A stretch of DNA of 64,000 bases from Haliotis rufescens (GCF_023055435.1 NW_025963846.1:29078001-29142000); one strand, 5' to 3'; shown: positions 7,303 through 60,579, counted from the first letter of the stretch. Notes: a model not told the origin generated them from the letters alone. Numbers and translations: made by a program.

Positions 7303-8316
7303 TCACTGGCGACGCAGGAACACACCAATACCAACACCAATACCAATCGCACAGACTGCAAGGTAGCCATAATCCAGTTTCATCAAAACAGGATCCGAGC
7401 AAACTGTTTTCAGCATTTCACAAACTTGTTCTGCAGTTGGGCGTTTGGACATGTTTCTCCGTAAGGCTGCCTTGATCACGTCTCCAAGTCCCTGGTCAGC
7501 GACATGACGGAGTTCTATTTCCCCTCTTACCTCGGCAAGACGGCGTACAGTGTAGTAGGCAACTAGTTTGTCGTCGTCGAATTCAGGACGCAATAAAGCA
7601 AAGGCGATAGCGCCAAGAGAGAAAATATCACTTTTATCTGTCAGAGCCGCTTCAGGGGGTGAAAAACAAGTGTCTCCTGTCTCATCGTTCTCGTCATGTT
7701 CCCCATCTTCCCCGTCATGTACGCCAAAATGTCCCCCTTCATGTACGCCAAAATGTCCCCCGTCATGTACGCCAAAATGTCCCCCGTCATGTACGCTAAA
7801 ATGTCCCCCGTCATGATCCCCGCCATGTCTCATGTCACGTTCCAGGCCACGTCTCCCGTCATATTCCGACAATGAGCGAGCCGATCCAAATCCTGCAATG
7901 TTATAAACCGCTCGATTGTACCATGTCACAAGGATGTTTTCTGGCTGCAGGTTACGGTGTTCTATGCGCAAGTTATGAAGAAACTCCAATCCACTGCCAA
8001 TGTCGGTTACGACAGAACGACAGTCGGCCTCGTCTAGAGGATTCTTCGAGTTTGAACGTTTACTCACATACTGGTCCAGGCTGCCTTCCTCGCAATATTC
8101 AAAGGTCAGTGTGAAGCAATCTGCAGTAAAACCTTCACCAATCATCTTGACAATGTTCTTGGCCCCTTCAGATTCTGCACATTGTCGGAGTATGTTCTTT
8201 TCGGCGGCTGCTTGACGTTGTGAGCAGACAAGTACTTTCTCAACAACCATCTTGTTACCTTTCTTTTCCTTGCGCACTCTTGAGGACCGACCAGGAACAA
8301 GTTCCCTTCCCTTCAT
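7303..8316 (-). CDS. Tail-anchored pseudokinase, subfamily A (A1, 337 aa from the ATG shared with paralogues)
   Basis: Motifs VVEK, AEKNIL, FEYCEEG, HRNLQPENILV, IAGFG, PPE, SDIFSLG, RPTAEQV; 4 HDGGHFGV-type repeats; C-terminal YLAVCAIGIGVGIGVFLRRQ. The ORF-track start at 8385 is a GTG. Confidence 0.9.
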   Translation of the reverse strand: MKGRELVPGRSSRVRKEKKGNKMVVEKVLVCSQRQAAAEKNILRQCAESEGAKNIVKMIGEGFTADCFTLTFEYCEEGSLDQYVSKRSNSKNPLDEADCRSVVTDIGSGLEFLHNLRIEHRNLQPENILVTWYNRAVYNIAGFGSARSLSEYDGRRGLERDMRHGGDHDGGHFSVHDGGHFGVHDGGHFGVHEGGHFGVHDGEDGEHDENDETGDTCFSPPEAALTDKSDIFSLGAIAFALLRPEFDDDKLVAYYTVRRLAEVRGEIELRHVADQGLGDVIKAALRRNMSKRPTAEQVCEMLKTVCSDPVLMKLDYGYLAVCAIGIGVGIGVFLRRQ

Positions 8317-9153
8317 TCTTCGTATTCGTGGAATACAACTCTTCTGAACAGTCTCAAGGAAATGCGACGTAGTAGTAGGTGACACCTGACTGAGAGTCAG
8401 TAGGTCAGGTCGTGATTCGGATAACCCTTATTGTTACCCAAGGCAATCAGGACGACCATCCTTCGTCACTACTCGCCTCTTTCCGTAGCTTGTCCCGGAA
8501 TGAACCACGACATGTGGTATTCAGCAGAACCATGTAAACAGTTTATCAAGGACAATGATCGAAAAATACTGATTACCTCGTCATTTGATGAGGATTTACT
8601 GTACAGTCAATTACTTAGCGTGGGATCCAAATCGAGAAGGGCCAGAATCACCTGTGTATAAGGTCATGTCACAGTAAAGGTCAATATTACAGAATGTTTG
8701 CAATGCAGGGTTGTTATTTGAATACTTAACACTTATGAGCGACGAGTGTTGACAATCTTATGATACGAGGAGTTGGTCATGGTCTTGGCCTTTGATGGAG
8801 TCCTTGGCTTTATTTTTGGTCCTTTGCTTATTTTGGTTTTCGCACGGACACGGGACTTGCATGTAGGGGTCGTTGTTCATCCGGTGCTTGCAGCTGTGGA
8901 AAGTGGAGCCCAAGGGTACCAGTTGTTCTTCACATCGATTTGCCGTAAACAACACATCACAGTTATAATATGTGGCCGAATTGTGGTTTCCGTGGCACCA
9001 TTGACAGACAGTGTGGTCAACTGATCTCCCATTCACAATGTTGGTGGTTGGTTGTATTGTGGACTCCACAGCTGGCTCTCTACATATCCACACAGTTTCA
9101 CTTCATATTGATCCATAGAAATATATTGGGATAATGATCTCTTTAATTCTTTT

Positions 9154-56920: not shown

Positions 56921-59589
56921 TCTGTTCAGCGAGATCGCCCGACGCACACTGCATGCGACACACTCTTATAGTACATGTGGTATACTGGAGTGGGTGAGTG
57001 AGTTGGGTTTAACGCCGCTTTCAACAGTATTCCAGTTATATCACGGCATGTCAGCTTTATGTGGGAGGAAAGCCCGAAGTGATGCAGGTCTCTGACGTTT
57101 ACCACTTTGGTGAAATCCAAGAGCACGGGTATGGTGCTGACAAACCTAGAAACATAATCAGAACGAACCGGGATTCGAACCCACAATCATAGGTTTCTGG
57201 CGTGCCCAAGGGACTCAACTCTGCACAGCGAATCGCGGCGCCTTGGACGACTGGGCCACCCGTGCCCCCGGTATACTAGATATTGCACTTGATAAACGGT
57301 ATACTGCATGTAATATACGTTTCGGTCGTGACAAAGGTCATGCCCTCACGCCCTCAATAAGGGTTGTGAATGATGTATAGTGGACAATCGATATGAGTGC
57401 ATAAAAAAATGAATTGTTTGCAAACATTGACTTATTGCTGAGCAATAATTATTATAGATAGACATGGATTTTGAATTGAATTTGCTGTGGACCACTTTTT
57501 TATTTAATAATGTACAATACGACTAACTAAATACATTGACATACATACATCCATGATACAGAATCAAGCAAATATACATACGAATGCTTATGCTGGTTGA
57601 TAAGAATTGGGCATCAGCAATGAAAACATTGCTTGATACGAGGGCTGGTCAAAAAGCTCTAAGCCTGACTAACTTTCATCTATGGGTCATTAGAACAATC
57701 AATGTACAGTGAACTACGGTTATAACGAACACGCTTATAACGAACTAACGGATATAACGAACTAACTTTTTAGTCCCAACTATTTGCTGTAGCTATACTG
57801 TATATATGCTTATAACGAATTACGGTTATAACGAACTAAAATTAGTAGTCCCTTTGAGTTCGTTATAACCGTAGTTTACTGTAGTACATTGTTTGAGTAG
57901 TTCATTGCCCGTGTATTTGATCTGTTGAGGCCGTTTGCATATTTGTGATGGCCAGTTGAACATAATTAAAGTTTAGTGCGTCAACATTTTCCTCAGTCTG
58001 ATGCTATTCAAATGGTGATGGCAGTATCGTGAAATGTACAGAAGCTAACATATTCGTGTGTATTTATTCAAGTAAGATATGAGTAAGGACCAGGTTCTAT
58101 GCCACAATAGTTTGTAATGTTGTTGTTTGTTATATATCATTGTTTTTATGACAACAGTGTGTGGCATTGTGAAGCATGCTTAAGTGCGTGTATGTCATAT
58201 TTCACTGAAACCCAGTAATGCGGTTCAATACCACTGGAGATAGAACTGGGTCGATCCCGACGCCCACCGACTCCCCTACTAGAACGTGGGGTTGGGGTTG
58301 GGGTGGTGTGGTGTGGGGTGGTGTGGGGTGGGGTGGTGTGGGGTGGGGTGGGGTGGGGTGGGATGGTGTGGGGTGGGGTGGGGTGGGGTGGTGTGGGGTG
58401 GTGTGGGGTGGTTATAACCGTAGTTTACTGTAGTACATTGTTTGAGTAGTTCATTGCCCGTGTATTTGATCTATTGAGGCCGTTTGCATATTTGTGATGG
58501 CCAGTTGAACATAATTAAAGTTTAGTGCGTCAACATTTTCCTCAGTCTGAGAGAGAACAATGGTCATTACAGTTATGAATGGGGCAACGGCGATCGGAGG
58601 GAGTAGAGATGGCAGGCTGGACGAGAGTAGATGGGATATGGGATACATTGGGAGGAGGAGGGGGGGTTGTGTGTGTCTTATTTGCACGTTTGGGTTTTCG
58701 GCGGATCCTCAAAGGAAAACAAGTCTTACTGGTGGGTGCACCATCATCGGAGCTTGTAGTTTTAAACGAGGAAAGAGACATTGTAACTTACAGACTTAAC
58801 AAGAATGACAAAGTTGTATTCACACTTACCCAGAGGAAATATAAAACTGTAAACACAAAACACTAAAAGTCACCAAGTCACTGACACATGGCATTGAGTT
58901 CAGTTGGAATGTTTTGCCTTTGATGAAGTCCTTGGTTTTCTTTTAGTTACTGCGCGGACAGGGCTTCGCATGTAGGGGTCGTTGTTCATGCGTTGCTTGC
59001 AGCTGTGGAAAGTGGAGTCCAAGGGTACTAGTTGTTCTTCACATCAGTTTGCCGTAAACCACACATCACAGTTATAATATGTGACAGAATCCTTTTCACC
59101 AAGCTACAAAGTGTCTGAATTGTGGTTTACGTGGCACAATTCACAGACAGTGTGGTCAACTGATCTCCTATTCACGATGTTGGTGGCTGCCTTCGTCAAG
59201 CTGACTTGTGCTGTAGACTCAGGATGGAAGGATATCGTCCACAGCTGGCTCCCTACATACCACATACACAGTGTCACTTCATATTTGAGTGTCCCAGTGA
59301 TGCCTCATCCATAGAAATAGATTGGCACAATGATCCAGTGAAGTTTGAGAAATATATCTCTCTATCAAGTCGTAATTCTTGTGATGAAAATGTTACACCA
59401 GATGCGCAGTACGAGCAGACTTCCAACAAGGATATTCCTTTATATTTATGACAATACTCGTTCAAAGTAATCTCCTGCATGAAAATGATTTGCACAACTA
59501 TAGATACTGTAGGAGACAATGTAGACTACTTCAGAATTTAAGTCATTTCCTCGGTGATCTGTTTGAGTAAATGCAGACAGGCTCCCTTT

Positions 59590-60579
59590 TCACTGGCGAC
59601 GCAGGAACACACCAATACCAACACCAATACCAATCGCACAGATTGCAAGGTAGCCATAAGCCAGTTTCATCAAAACAGAATCCGAGTAAACTGTTTTCAG
59701 CATTTCACAAACTTGTTCTGCTGTTGGGCGTTTGGACATGTCTCTCCGTAAGGCTGCCTTGATCACGTCTCCCAGTCCCTGATCAGCGACATGACGGAGT
59801 TCTATTTCCCCTCTTACCTCGGCCAGACGGCGTCCATTGTAGTAGGCAACTAGTTTGTCGTCGTCGAATTCAGGACGCAATAAAGCAAAGGCGATAGCGC
59901 CAAGAGAGAAAATATCACTTTTATCTGTCAGAGCCGCTTCAGGGGGTGAAAAACAAGTGTCTCCTGCCCCATCGTTCTCGTCATGTTCCCCATCTTCCCC
60001 GGCATGTACGCCAAAATGTCCCCCGTCATGTACGCCAAAATGTCCCCCGTCATGTACGCCAAAATGTCCCCCGTCATGATCCCCGCCATGTCTCCTGTCA
60101 CGTTCCAGGCCACGTCTCCCGTCACATTCCGATAACGAGCGAGCCGATCCAAATCCTGCTATTTTATAAACCGCTCGATTGTACCATGTCACAAGGATGT
60201 TTTCTGGCTGCAGATTACGGTGTTCTATACGCAAGTTATGAAGAAACTCCAATCCACTGCCAATGTCGGTTACGACAGAACGACAGTCGGCCTCGTCTAG
60301 AGGATTCTTCGAGTTTGAACGTTTACTCACATACTGGTCCAGGTTGCCTTCCTCGCAATATTCAAAGGTCAGTGTGAAGCCATCTGCAGTAAAACCTTCA
60401 CCAATCATCTTGACAATGTTCTTGGCCCCTTCAGATTCCCCGCATTGTCGGAGTATGTTCTTTTCGGCGGCTGCTTGAAGTTGTGAGCAGACAAGTACTT
60501 TCTCAACAACCATCTTGTTACCTTTCTTTTCCTTGCGCACTCTTGAGAACCGACCAGGAACAAGTTCTATTCCCGCCAT
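59590..60579 (-). CDS. Tail-anchored pseudokinase A4 (329 aa)
   Basis: Intact ORF; 3 HDGGHFGV repeats; no adjacent B gene upstream. Confidence 0.92.
   Translation of the reverse strand: MAGIELVPGRFSRVRKEKKGNKMVVEKVLVCSQLQAAAEKNILRQCGESEGAKNIVKMIGEGFTADGFTLTFEYCEEGNLDQYVSKRSNSKNPLDEADCRSVVTDIGSGLEFLHNLRIEHRNLQPENILVTWYNRAVYKIAGFGSARSLSECDGRRGLERDRRHGGDHDGGHFGVHDGGHFGVHDGGHFGVHAGEDGEHDENDGAGDTCFSPPEAALTDKSDIFSLGAIAFALLRPEFDDDKLVAYYNGRRLAEVRGEIELRHVADQGLGDVIKAALRRDMSKRPTAEQVCEMLKTVYSDSVLMKLAYGYLAICAIGIGVGIGVFLRRQ

Follow-up and report, generated by a model that had tools for sequence, protein, structure and literature searches.

A 64,000-nucleotide stretch of the genome of the abalone Haliotis rufescens (GCF_023055435.1, NW_025963846.1; C68:29,078,001-29,142,000), analysed at its full length and hereafter called the window, carries eight protein kinase-like open reading frames (ORFs) on its minus strand. 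The array is best explained as a set of real protein-coding genes belonging to an abalone-restricted family of membrane-anchored pseudokinases that act by binding, a reading to which a probability of about 0.6 is assigned. The proteins, of approximately 290-400 amino acids, each comprise a kinase fold, from which the catalytic base Asp, the Lys near it and the metal-binding Asp have been lost, followed directly by a hydrophobic C-terminal segment, and what is known of pseudokinases (MLKL, CASK, STRAD, ROP5 and ZED1/RKS1) and of tail-anchored proteins suggests that the domain would face the cytosol while tethered to an organelle membrane. Amplification on one strand has proceeded by unequal crossing-over of units of approximately 7.7 kb comprising a type A and a type B gene, with patchwise homogenisation by gene conversion and turnover by birth and death. 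Selection keeps the frames open and freezes about one fifth of the codons, those of the fold-defining motifs, with the remainder drifting or diversifying such that the ratio of non-synonymous to synonymous substitution rates (dN/dS, omega) lies near 1. The products would play the part of scaffold, bait or decoy in an interaction that changes rapidly, and a decoy or scaffold function may be inferred for the family. That this interaction is one of conflict, whether immune or reproductive, is suggested tentatively and at clearly less than even odds.

ORF calls and matches to the Pfam Pkinase profile (PF00069; E values of 2e-16 to 4e-26 for the eight window ORFs, above the gathering score) distinguish four genes of type A, three of type B and one of type C. 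The type A proteins comprise 337 or 329 amino acids and the type B proteins 288, with 57 % identity between A and B and 95-100 % identity among copies of one type in the protein alignment of the window copies. Two intact type A genes encode 337-amino-acid pseudokinases, namely A1 (7303-8316; nr record P0168), which incorporates the catalytic-loop motif HRN, the motif GFG, four His/Gly octarepeats and a C-terminal transmembrane (TM) segment followed by RRQ, and A2 (44108-45121; P0167). The remaining two, A3 (51925-52914; P0172; three octarepeats) and A4 (59590-60579), encode intact proteins of 329 amino acids, and a Tc1 segment occurs upstream of A4 where a B gene would stand. The type B genes, B1 (9154-10020; HGN, GFG and a hydrophobic segment at the C-terminus), B2 (46021-46887) and B3 (53814-54680), are similarly intact, and the B3 protein is identical to that of B2, which was used as query for homology, structure and complex prediction. 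The type C copy (34698-35913) is broken. A frameshift has removed its N-lobe, the main ORF (34698-35465) begins within this lobe and an N-terminal piece is found in another frame (~35455-35913), and both the family start codon and the hydrophobic tail are absent. The eight kinase-fold genes on one strand, seven of them intact, that an earlier note on this DNA had described were thus recovered, as were two of its three divergent subfamilies; the third, C, is a pseudogene subtype without a tail and not a further working subfamily.

The AlphaFold2 model of B2 (predicted local distance difference test score 84.5; predicted template modelling score 0.83) displays a kinase fold with a terminal helix at residues 262-287. 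Foldseek comparison using this model returned 500 matches, all of them kinases with near-equal scores, and a search of the ESM Atlas gave only generic kinase clusters. The Pkinase profile match and the bilobal predicted fold are those of a member of the protein kinase superfamily. The catalytic loop, which includes the His-Arg-Asp (HRD) motif in ordinary kinases, reads HRNLQPEN in A and HGNLLPEN or HGNIQPEN in the alignments of B and C, the Asp-Phe-Gly (DFG) motif is replaced by GFG in A, B and C alike, and the Gly-rich loop reads LV[PQ]GRFS, with one Gly of three left. The HRD Asp, the Lys that follows it and the DFG Asp have been lost jointly from all copies of the wider cluster (at least 29), with Asn and Gly, respectively, at the two Asp positions, losses that are characteristic of pseudokinases, and with the beta3 Lys retained. 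In a 40-kinase alignment, in which B was compared with 32 ordinary kinases, the B residues K27, E39, N126, F142-G143, P174-E175, D183 and R245 occupy columns with a conservation of at least 90 %, and the beta3 Lys, alphaC Glu, catalytic-loop Asn, PE, alphaF Asp and subdomain XI Arg have therefore been preserved. No conserved acidic residue that could compensate was found near the lost Asp sites in the family alignment. The proteins are probably unable to phosphorylate canonically, and may bind nucleotide via the retained Lys-Glu pair. As both lesions occur in all subtypes while the nearest outgroup abalone kinases retain HRD and D-x-G, the dead state is older than the A/B/C split. Thus the kinase fold, the shared HRN/HGN and GFG lesions, the degenerate Gly-rich loop, the retained structural residues and the early origin of the dead state that the earlier note had proposed all found support, with the lesions now extended to the entire cluster.

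The activation segment of type A contains three or four copies of a His/Gly-rich octapeptide, which is encoded by a 24-bp DNA repeat (44515-44620 in A2 and the equivalent place in A1, A3 and A4, minus strand) detected by tandem-repeat search and alignment. At the same site, a further subtype of the cluster, E, bears a far longer acidic Gly/Glu/Arg/Asp repeat, and C bears an intermediate form. Indels within the activation segment are all in frame in the family alignment. The insert is hypervariable and a candidate metal binder. Prediction of an A-B heterodimer gave scores of 0.10 and 0.00 against a mark of 0.34, which speak neither for nor against binding.

Hydropathy analysis was extended to the intact subtypes of the wider cluster, which include B', D and E in addition to A and B. 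In all five, the best 19-residue window has a Kyte-Doolittle mean of 1.6-2.1 and is located 3-17 residues from the C-terminus, although the tails have diverged too far between subtypes to be aligned. This tail is absent in C. The hydropathy profile revealed no other TM segment, with a peak elsewhere only at the buried alphaF helix, and no N-terminal signal peptide or extension is present, the proteins opening directly at beta1 of the N-lobe (residue 1-10). A single hydrophobic segment within about 30 residues of the C-terminus and none at the N-terminus is the sequence pattern of a tail-anchored protein.

The RefSeq A and D proteins match the ORFs exactly, and the A and D coding regions are therefore single-exon. 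All RefSeq B models, by contrast, are spliced at a GT donor after 'AEQ', inside the ORF (after base 46138 in B2), to one or the other of two short 3' coding exons located in the B-A spacer (45779-45711 and 45485-45441, minus strand), both preceded by canonical pyrimidine-rich AG acceptors, whereby the TM tail is swapped for a short soluble end. These models suggest that splicing can also free B from the membrane. Among the RefSeq models there are furthermore an A4-B3 chimera, with a donor (GAG/GTAAGA) after A4 residue 254 (59818) and an acceptor at B3 residue 216 (54035), and a B'-B' double-kinase protein. Canonical GT/AG sites are used throughout in the chimeras and tail-less B isoforms, which may reflect read-through transcription along the array or reads mis-assigned among paralogues. 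The tail anchoring claimed in the earlier note can thus be retained as a prediction for A, B, B', D and E, but not for C, and the RefSeq B models splice the tail away; similarly, the term intronless applies to the coding ORFs and to the A and D models, but not to the B models spliced within the ORF.

The A and B genes occur in tandem units of approximately 7.7-7.8 kb at 43090-61076, which are 97-98 % identical to each other in self-comparison of the window (43090-49123 versus 50901-56920, 97.4 %; 50901-53410 versus 58572-61076, 98.4 %) and support the co-amplification of A and B that had been proposed. Each unit is ordered as 41-bp satellite, A, spacer, B and transposon-rich spacer. A separate A1/B1 unit with an upstream Tc1 segment is located at 5223-13887, of which 6478-8981 shares 94.7 % identity with the A2 region and 8972-10700 shares 98.4 % with the B2 region. 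The segment 10704-13887 (3.2 kb upstream of A1/B1, Tc1 fragment included) is 98.65 % identical to 60793-63985 upstream of A4. Tandem-repeat search placed the 41-bp satellite at 1-5087 (5 kb; 124 copies) and in shorter blocks at 40691-41720, 48771-49205 and 56568-56920. Satellite blocks flank each A+B unit, and may form the substrate for unequal crossing-over. An assembly gap (N; 16388-16657 and 16668-16803) is intergenic, at the end of a (TGGGTG)n array (13733-16380) and between the Tc1 fragment and retroelement ORFs. It touches no kinase ORF and the gene claims are independent of it; the order and distance of the A1/B1 unit relative to the other units of the array are provisional.

Six-frame searching of the 1.33 Gb assembly yielded 53 matches, nearly all located at C68 28.943-29.197 Mb on the minus strand. 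The inventory compiled from 30 loci of approximately 3.5 kb and the window comprises a one-strand cluster of approximately 255 kb with at least 29 copies, of which approximately 20 are intact and nine are broken. The intact copies include A (eight copies, all with different proteins), B (six copies), B' (four copies; catalytic loop HAN), D (one copy) and E (one copy; 405 amino acids, with a long acidic insert of the GERDGE type). The three C copies are broken by a stop codon or the lack of an ATG at the family start, the full-length copies beyond the window having a stop codon at the start position and the window copy being frameshifted as well, and none has a tail. The other broken copies are of types F (two copies; in-frame TGA), E' (two copies; TAA) and B'' (two copies; N-terminus split off approximately 6 kb away). 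Every copy in the cluster has GFG and lacks the HRD Asp.

Two macro-blocks within the cluster (C68 28.98-29.07 and 29.12-29.20 Mb) are offset by 128.5-137 kb and are 98.3-99.95 % identical, non-coding DNA included, and represent a segmental duplication of very recent date or, alternatively, two haplotypes assembled in tandem. The latter, which would roughly halve the true copy number but leave the tandem units inside the window unaffected, is a serious possibility that nevertheless falls short of even odds. In its favour are the high identity across non-coding sequence, with one additional A-B unit in the left block, and the presence of an assembly gap and long satellites near the block junction. 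Molluscan genomes are, furthermore, described as highly heterozygous and hemizygous (bioRxiv 10.1101/2020.09.15.298695), which also favours tandem haplotypes. However, the left block holds an intact E at the position where the window has the broken C, so that different subtypes occupy corresponding positions, the identity varies from 98.3 % to 99.95 % among segments, and both blocks are annotated by RefSeq.

No close relatives outside H. rufescens and H. cracherodii were found in a word-indexed search of 5.8 billion proteins, in agreement with the lineage-specific family that the earlier note had envisaged. When 1.84 billion cluster representatives were scanned in full with HMMER, the score fell from 418 bits for type D to 161 bits for unrelated multi-kinase proteins, which belong to an oomycete, a crinoid, a trichomonad and a plant. 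A viral origin was considered and rejected, with no relative in IMG/VR. The cross-species comparison comprises the H. cracherodii protein (P0003), which differs from A2 at 13/337 residues, and the frame, motifs and tail are retained in this orthologue. The names given to family members in RefSeq conflict with one another, and include ULK3-like, mos-like, aurora A-like, irlF, PKR-like and ark1-like. Among solved structures the best relative is ULK3 (55 bits), while the closest active-looking relative found is a H. rubra protein (P0048; 33 % identical, 87 bits), which RefSeq names 'pdik1l-A-like'. The kinship with STK35/PDIK1L that the earlier note had proposed derives only from this automatic name, and the link is not established: the best non-abalone matches of P0048 itself are CDPK-like kinases (31-33 %) and the best solved relative is ULK3. 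At least ten further H. rufescens loci match P0048 at 35-42 % identity with uninterrupted open frames of 294-369 amino acids (C445:13.76-13.93 Mb, C445:47.12 Mb, C1:12.81 Mb, C501:2.39 Mb and C101:11.87 Mb), six of which cluster on C445. These loci appear to constitute a second abalone-specific, fast-evolving small-kinase family that is the likely source of the pseudokinase branch, and the pseudokinase cluster looks like a derived branch of such abalone-specific small, fast-evolving kinases.

Pairwise omega values obtained by the Nei-Gojobori (NG86) method range from 0.65 to 0.85, including 0.72 for A-B (bootstrap 0.51-0.97), 0.80 for A-D and 0.85 for B-E. Maximum likelihood (ML) estimates were made with an own implementation that reproduces the IQ-TREE likelihood; NG86 gives a lower omega than ML, and neither was relied on alone. 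Among the site models for the kinase core, M1a is preferred to M0 (twice the log-likelihood difference 20) and M2a to M1a (13; p=0.0015), with M2a assigning 20 % of the codons to omega 0, 69 % to omega 1 and 11 % to omega ~3.9. A full-alignment M2a run with an omega2 of 7.6 was discarded, as it was driven by the non-homologous tails. Within the fold motifs (alphaC helix to beta4, hinge, PENILV, GFGSA, PPE, KSDIFSLG, KLVAYY and RPTAE), A2 and B2 show approximately 12 synonymous differences and one non-synonymous difference. Synonymous divergence (dS) forms a mosaic along the gene, from 0 to approximately 1, which indicates patchy gene conversion. In a neutral simulation, counting substitutions only, the probability of an open frame was approximately 0.01 at K=0.15 and 5e-4 at K=0.3, and yet A, B/B', D and E, counted as four or five deep lineages, stay open, with indels in frame, while several young copies are broken. 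This is read here as birth-and-death evolution with real selection for an expressed, folded protein that is weakly constrained over most of its surface, and possibly with diversifying selection on some sites.

Assembled contigs from four sequencing runs, which carry three organism labels and derive from four studies, are collinear with the genome at approximately 43.3-47.0 kb of the window. No splice joints inside the genes were reported in these contigs, nor were the RefSeq B junctions seen in them, and none of the sequencing sets containing this stretch is recorded as RNA. The contig sets are small (49-117 Mb), which fits either RNA-seq or low-coverage DNA in which only multi-copy regions assemble. 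As RNA and DNA are not separable here, the contigs were rejected as evidence of transcription.

Several of these observations weigh against functional membrane-anchored pseudokinases. The ML omega (GY+F3X4) amounts to 0.965 for 264 gap-free codons and to 0.95 for the 226 codons of the kinase core, the overall value is not different from 1 (likelihood ratio test 0.12), as is also the case in decaying genes, and neither the omega of 0.85 inside the A clade nor that of 0.57 inside the B clade is significantly below 1. Gene conversion breaks the single-tree assumption of the site models, such that the omega > 1 class may be inflated, and 9 of approximately 29 copies are already broken. The four-run contigs span genes and spacers alike, and the runs are only guessed to be RNA. 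Furthermore, the annotated B form is tail-less instead of tail-anchored, RefSeq also models A-B and B'-B' chimeras, and an immune or conflict role is read from the mode of evolution alone. The earlier note had named a dN/dS near 1 across the fold, together with a lack of transcripts, as evidence that would count against its interpretation; the former was found (0.95-0.97), which amounts to half of that combination. Much of this evidence would also be explained by a recently amplified, mostly non-functional and decaying family, in which youth and conversion from a few good copies have kept the frames open. Omega values of which none is significantly below 1, whether over the fold or within A or B, the nine broken copies, the conversion evident from the mosaic dS, the unproven expression and the chimeric, variable RefSeq models are all consistent with decay. 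Nevertheless, open frames in A, B/B', D and E over K of approximately 0.3 have, under neutral substitution alone, a probability of approximately 1e-3 or less per path, with indels uncounted. A class of 20 % of the codons has an omega of 0, and variation within the fold motifs is synonymous. Every intact subtype has retained a hydrophobic tail despite divergence beyond alignment, the indels of the activation segment are all in frame and the H. cracherodii orthologue is intact. Decay is thus considered unlikely.

If the genes are functional, their role may be sought in more than one kind of interaction. Abalone gamete-recognition genes are classic cases of positive selection, and fast-evolving reproductive membrane proteins of gamete or gonad, following the pattern of lysin, sp18 and VERL under sexual conflict, would fit both this precedent and the omega near 1 with a site class of approximately 3.9, as well as the confinement of the family to closely related abalone species. 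Gamete-recognition proteins are, however, secreted or extracellular, while the proteins of the array have no signal peptide and would expose their kinase domain to the cytosol. Immune or conflict families more typically show tandem amplification together with many pseudogenes, and a reproductive role is considered improbable. An equally speculative extension of the pseudokinase explanation, and one with little probability attached to it, is that the array represents an animal counterpart of plant and parasite decoy systems, in which copy-number-variable, organelle-tethered dead kinases would, through hypervariable surfaces and activation-segment inserts, bait pathogen effectors or else nucleate an immune signalling platform. 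The A and B tails would then direct the proteins to different membranes, and B would be toggled by splicing between an anchored and a soluble form, with the withering-syndrome rickettsia or abalone herpesvirus as examples of candidate effector sources. It is very improbable that the proteins are atypical active enzymes, either kinases or other nucleotide users, that employ substitute residues as do WNK, CASK and SelO. Nucleotide binding is possible, given that the beta3 Lys, alphaC Glu and catalytic-loop Asn have been preserved, and CASK works with GFG and without Mg. However, CASK itself retains the HRD Asp, whereas every copy in the array lacks the catalytic base Asp together with the catalytic-loop Lys and the DFG Asp, the Gly-rich loop has only one Gly of three, and the alignment holds no conserved compensating acidic residue nearby. 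Binding-type pseudokinases encoded by real genes remain the preferred explanation.

Between the kinase genes of the window only transposon and retroelement ORFs are found. Near-identical Tc1/mariner transposase fragments (11398-12204 and 61488-62294, plus strand; HTH_Tnp_Tc3_2 and partial DDE_3 domains) delimit the B1 and A4 units on their upstream side. The (TGGGTG)n microsatellite, which has an extreme GC skew, occurs at 13733-16380 (2.6 kb) and 63830-63997, with both copies located just past a Tc1 fragment within the duplicated 3.2 kb segment; long 'ORFs' at 13667-16888 were dismissed as artefacts of this repeat and the N run. A retroelement with two long ORFs encoding reverse transcriptase and RNase H domains (18788-22656, plus strand) is situated between the gap and C, and an element resembling a long interspersed nuclear element (30328-34100, minus strand) adjoins C. 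The latter incorporates an RVT_1 ORF (31762-32355), an unassigned ORF of 229 amino acids and, at 33612-34100, a further ORF that carries a poly-Asp run and a 39-bp tandem repeat. A further tandem repeat with a period of 202/416 bp and 78-91 % matches is present at 24594-25740.

Pseudokinases are well known, and amplified pseudokinase clusters are known in plants and apicomplexans. Literature searches yielded no published description of this family, of abalone or tail-anchored pseudokinases, of molluscan pseudokinase expansions, or of a tail-anchored, tandemly amplified and fast-evolving pseudokinase family in any animal, and RefSeq lists the genes solely under automatic names that contradict one another. 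Should they be functional, they would provide a natural series of dead kinase domains on one scaffold with differing surfaces, activation-loop inserts and membrane tails, a candidate locus for variation in copy number and in gene presence or absence in a mollusc that is farmed and threatened by disease, and a test case for a fold that is kept while most residues drift, with omega near 1 and frames open. If the array is decaying DNA, it would represent a clean molluscan example of birth-and-death evolution and a warning for automatic kinase annotation.

In sequence, the family is nearest to ULK3 and the small abalone kinases named 'pdik1l-A-like' or 'CDK2-like', but the latter keep HRD and D-x-G and have no hydrophobic tail. 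CASK similarly has GFG in place of DFG, but it retains the HRD Asp and is catalytically active, albeit slow and independent of Mg; it is also multidomain, conserved and single-copy. The C-terminal TM anchor of VRK2 sets a cytosol-facing kinase domain on the endoplasmic reticulum and nuclear envelope, and its dead paralogue VRK3 acts as a scaffold. These proteins belong to the CK1 group, VRK2 is active, and both are single-copy and conserved, unlike the amplified and fast-evolving abalone genes; no sequence kinship to either was detected in homology and solved-structure searches. The lesion pair of MLKL (HRD to HRN/HGK, DFG to GFE) is the same as that of the abalone proteins, and MLKL likewise keeps the beta3 Lys and acts non-catalytically at membranes. 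It is, however, a single-copy vertebrate gene product with an N-terminal four-helix-bundle executioner domain and no TM anchor, while the abalone proteins start at the kinase N-lobe, have neither the four-helix bundle nor the brace and end in a TM segment. Kinship with MLKL was rejected, as the top Foldseek match (6o5z; 21 % identity) is marginal and all kinases score alike. Among conflict systems, the plant RLCK-XII proteins ZED1 and RKS1 are clustered pseudokinase paralogues that serve as immune decoys or adaptors, but are soluble or lipid-modified and guarded by the nucleotide-binding leucine-rich repeat receptor ZAR1. Toxoplasma ROP5 forms a comparable tandem array of pseudokinase paralogues, is under diversifying selection and acts through binding in the conflict between host and pathogen. 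It belongs to another kinase lineage and is an effector secreted by the parasite, with a signal peptide and with N-terminal amphipathic helices that mediate its membrane association, whereas the abalone proteins have no N-terminal extension and instead carry their putative membrane anchor at the opposite end of the kinase domain.

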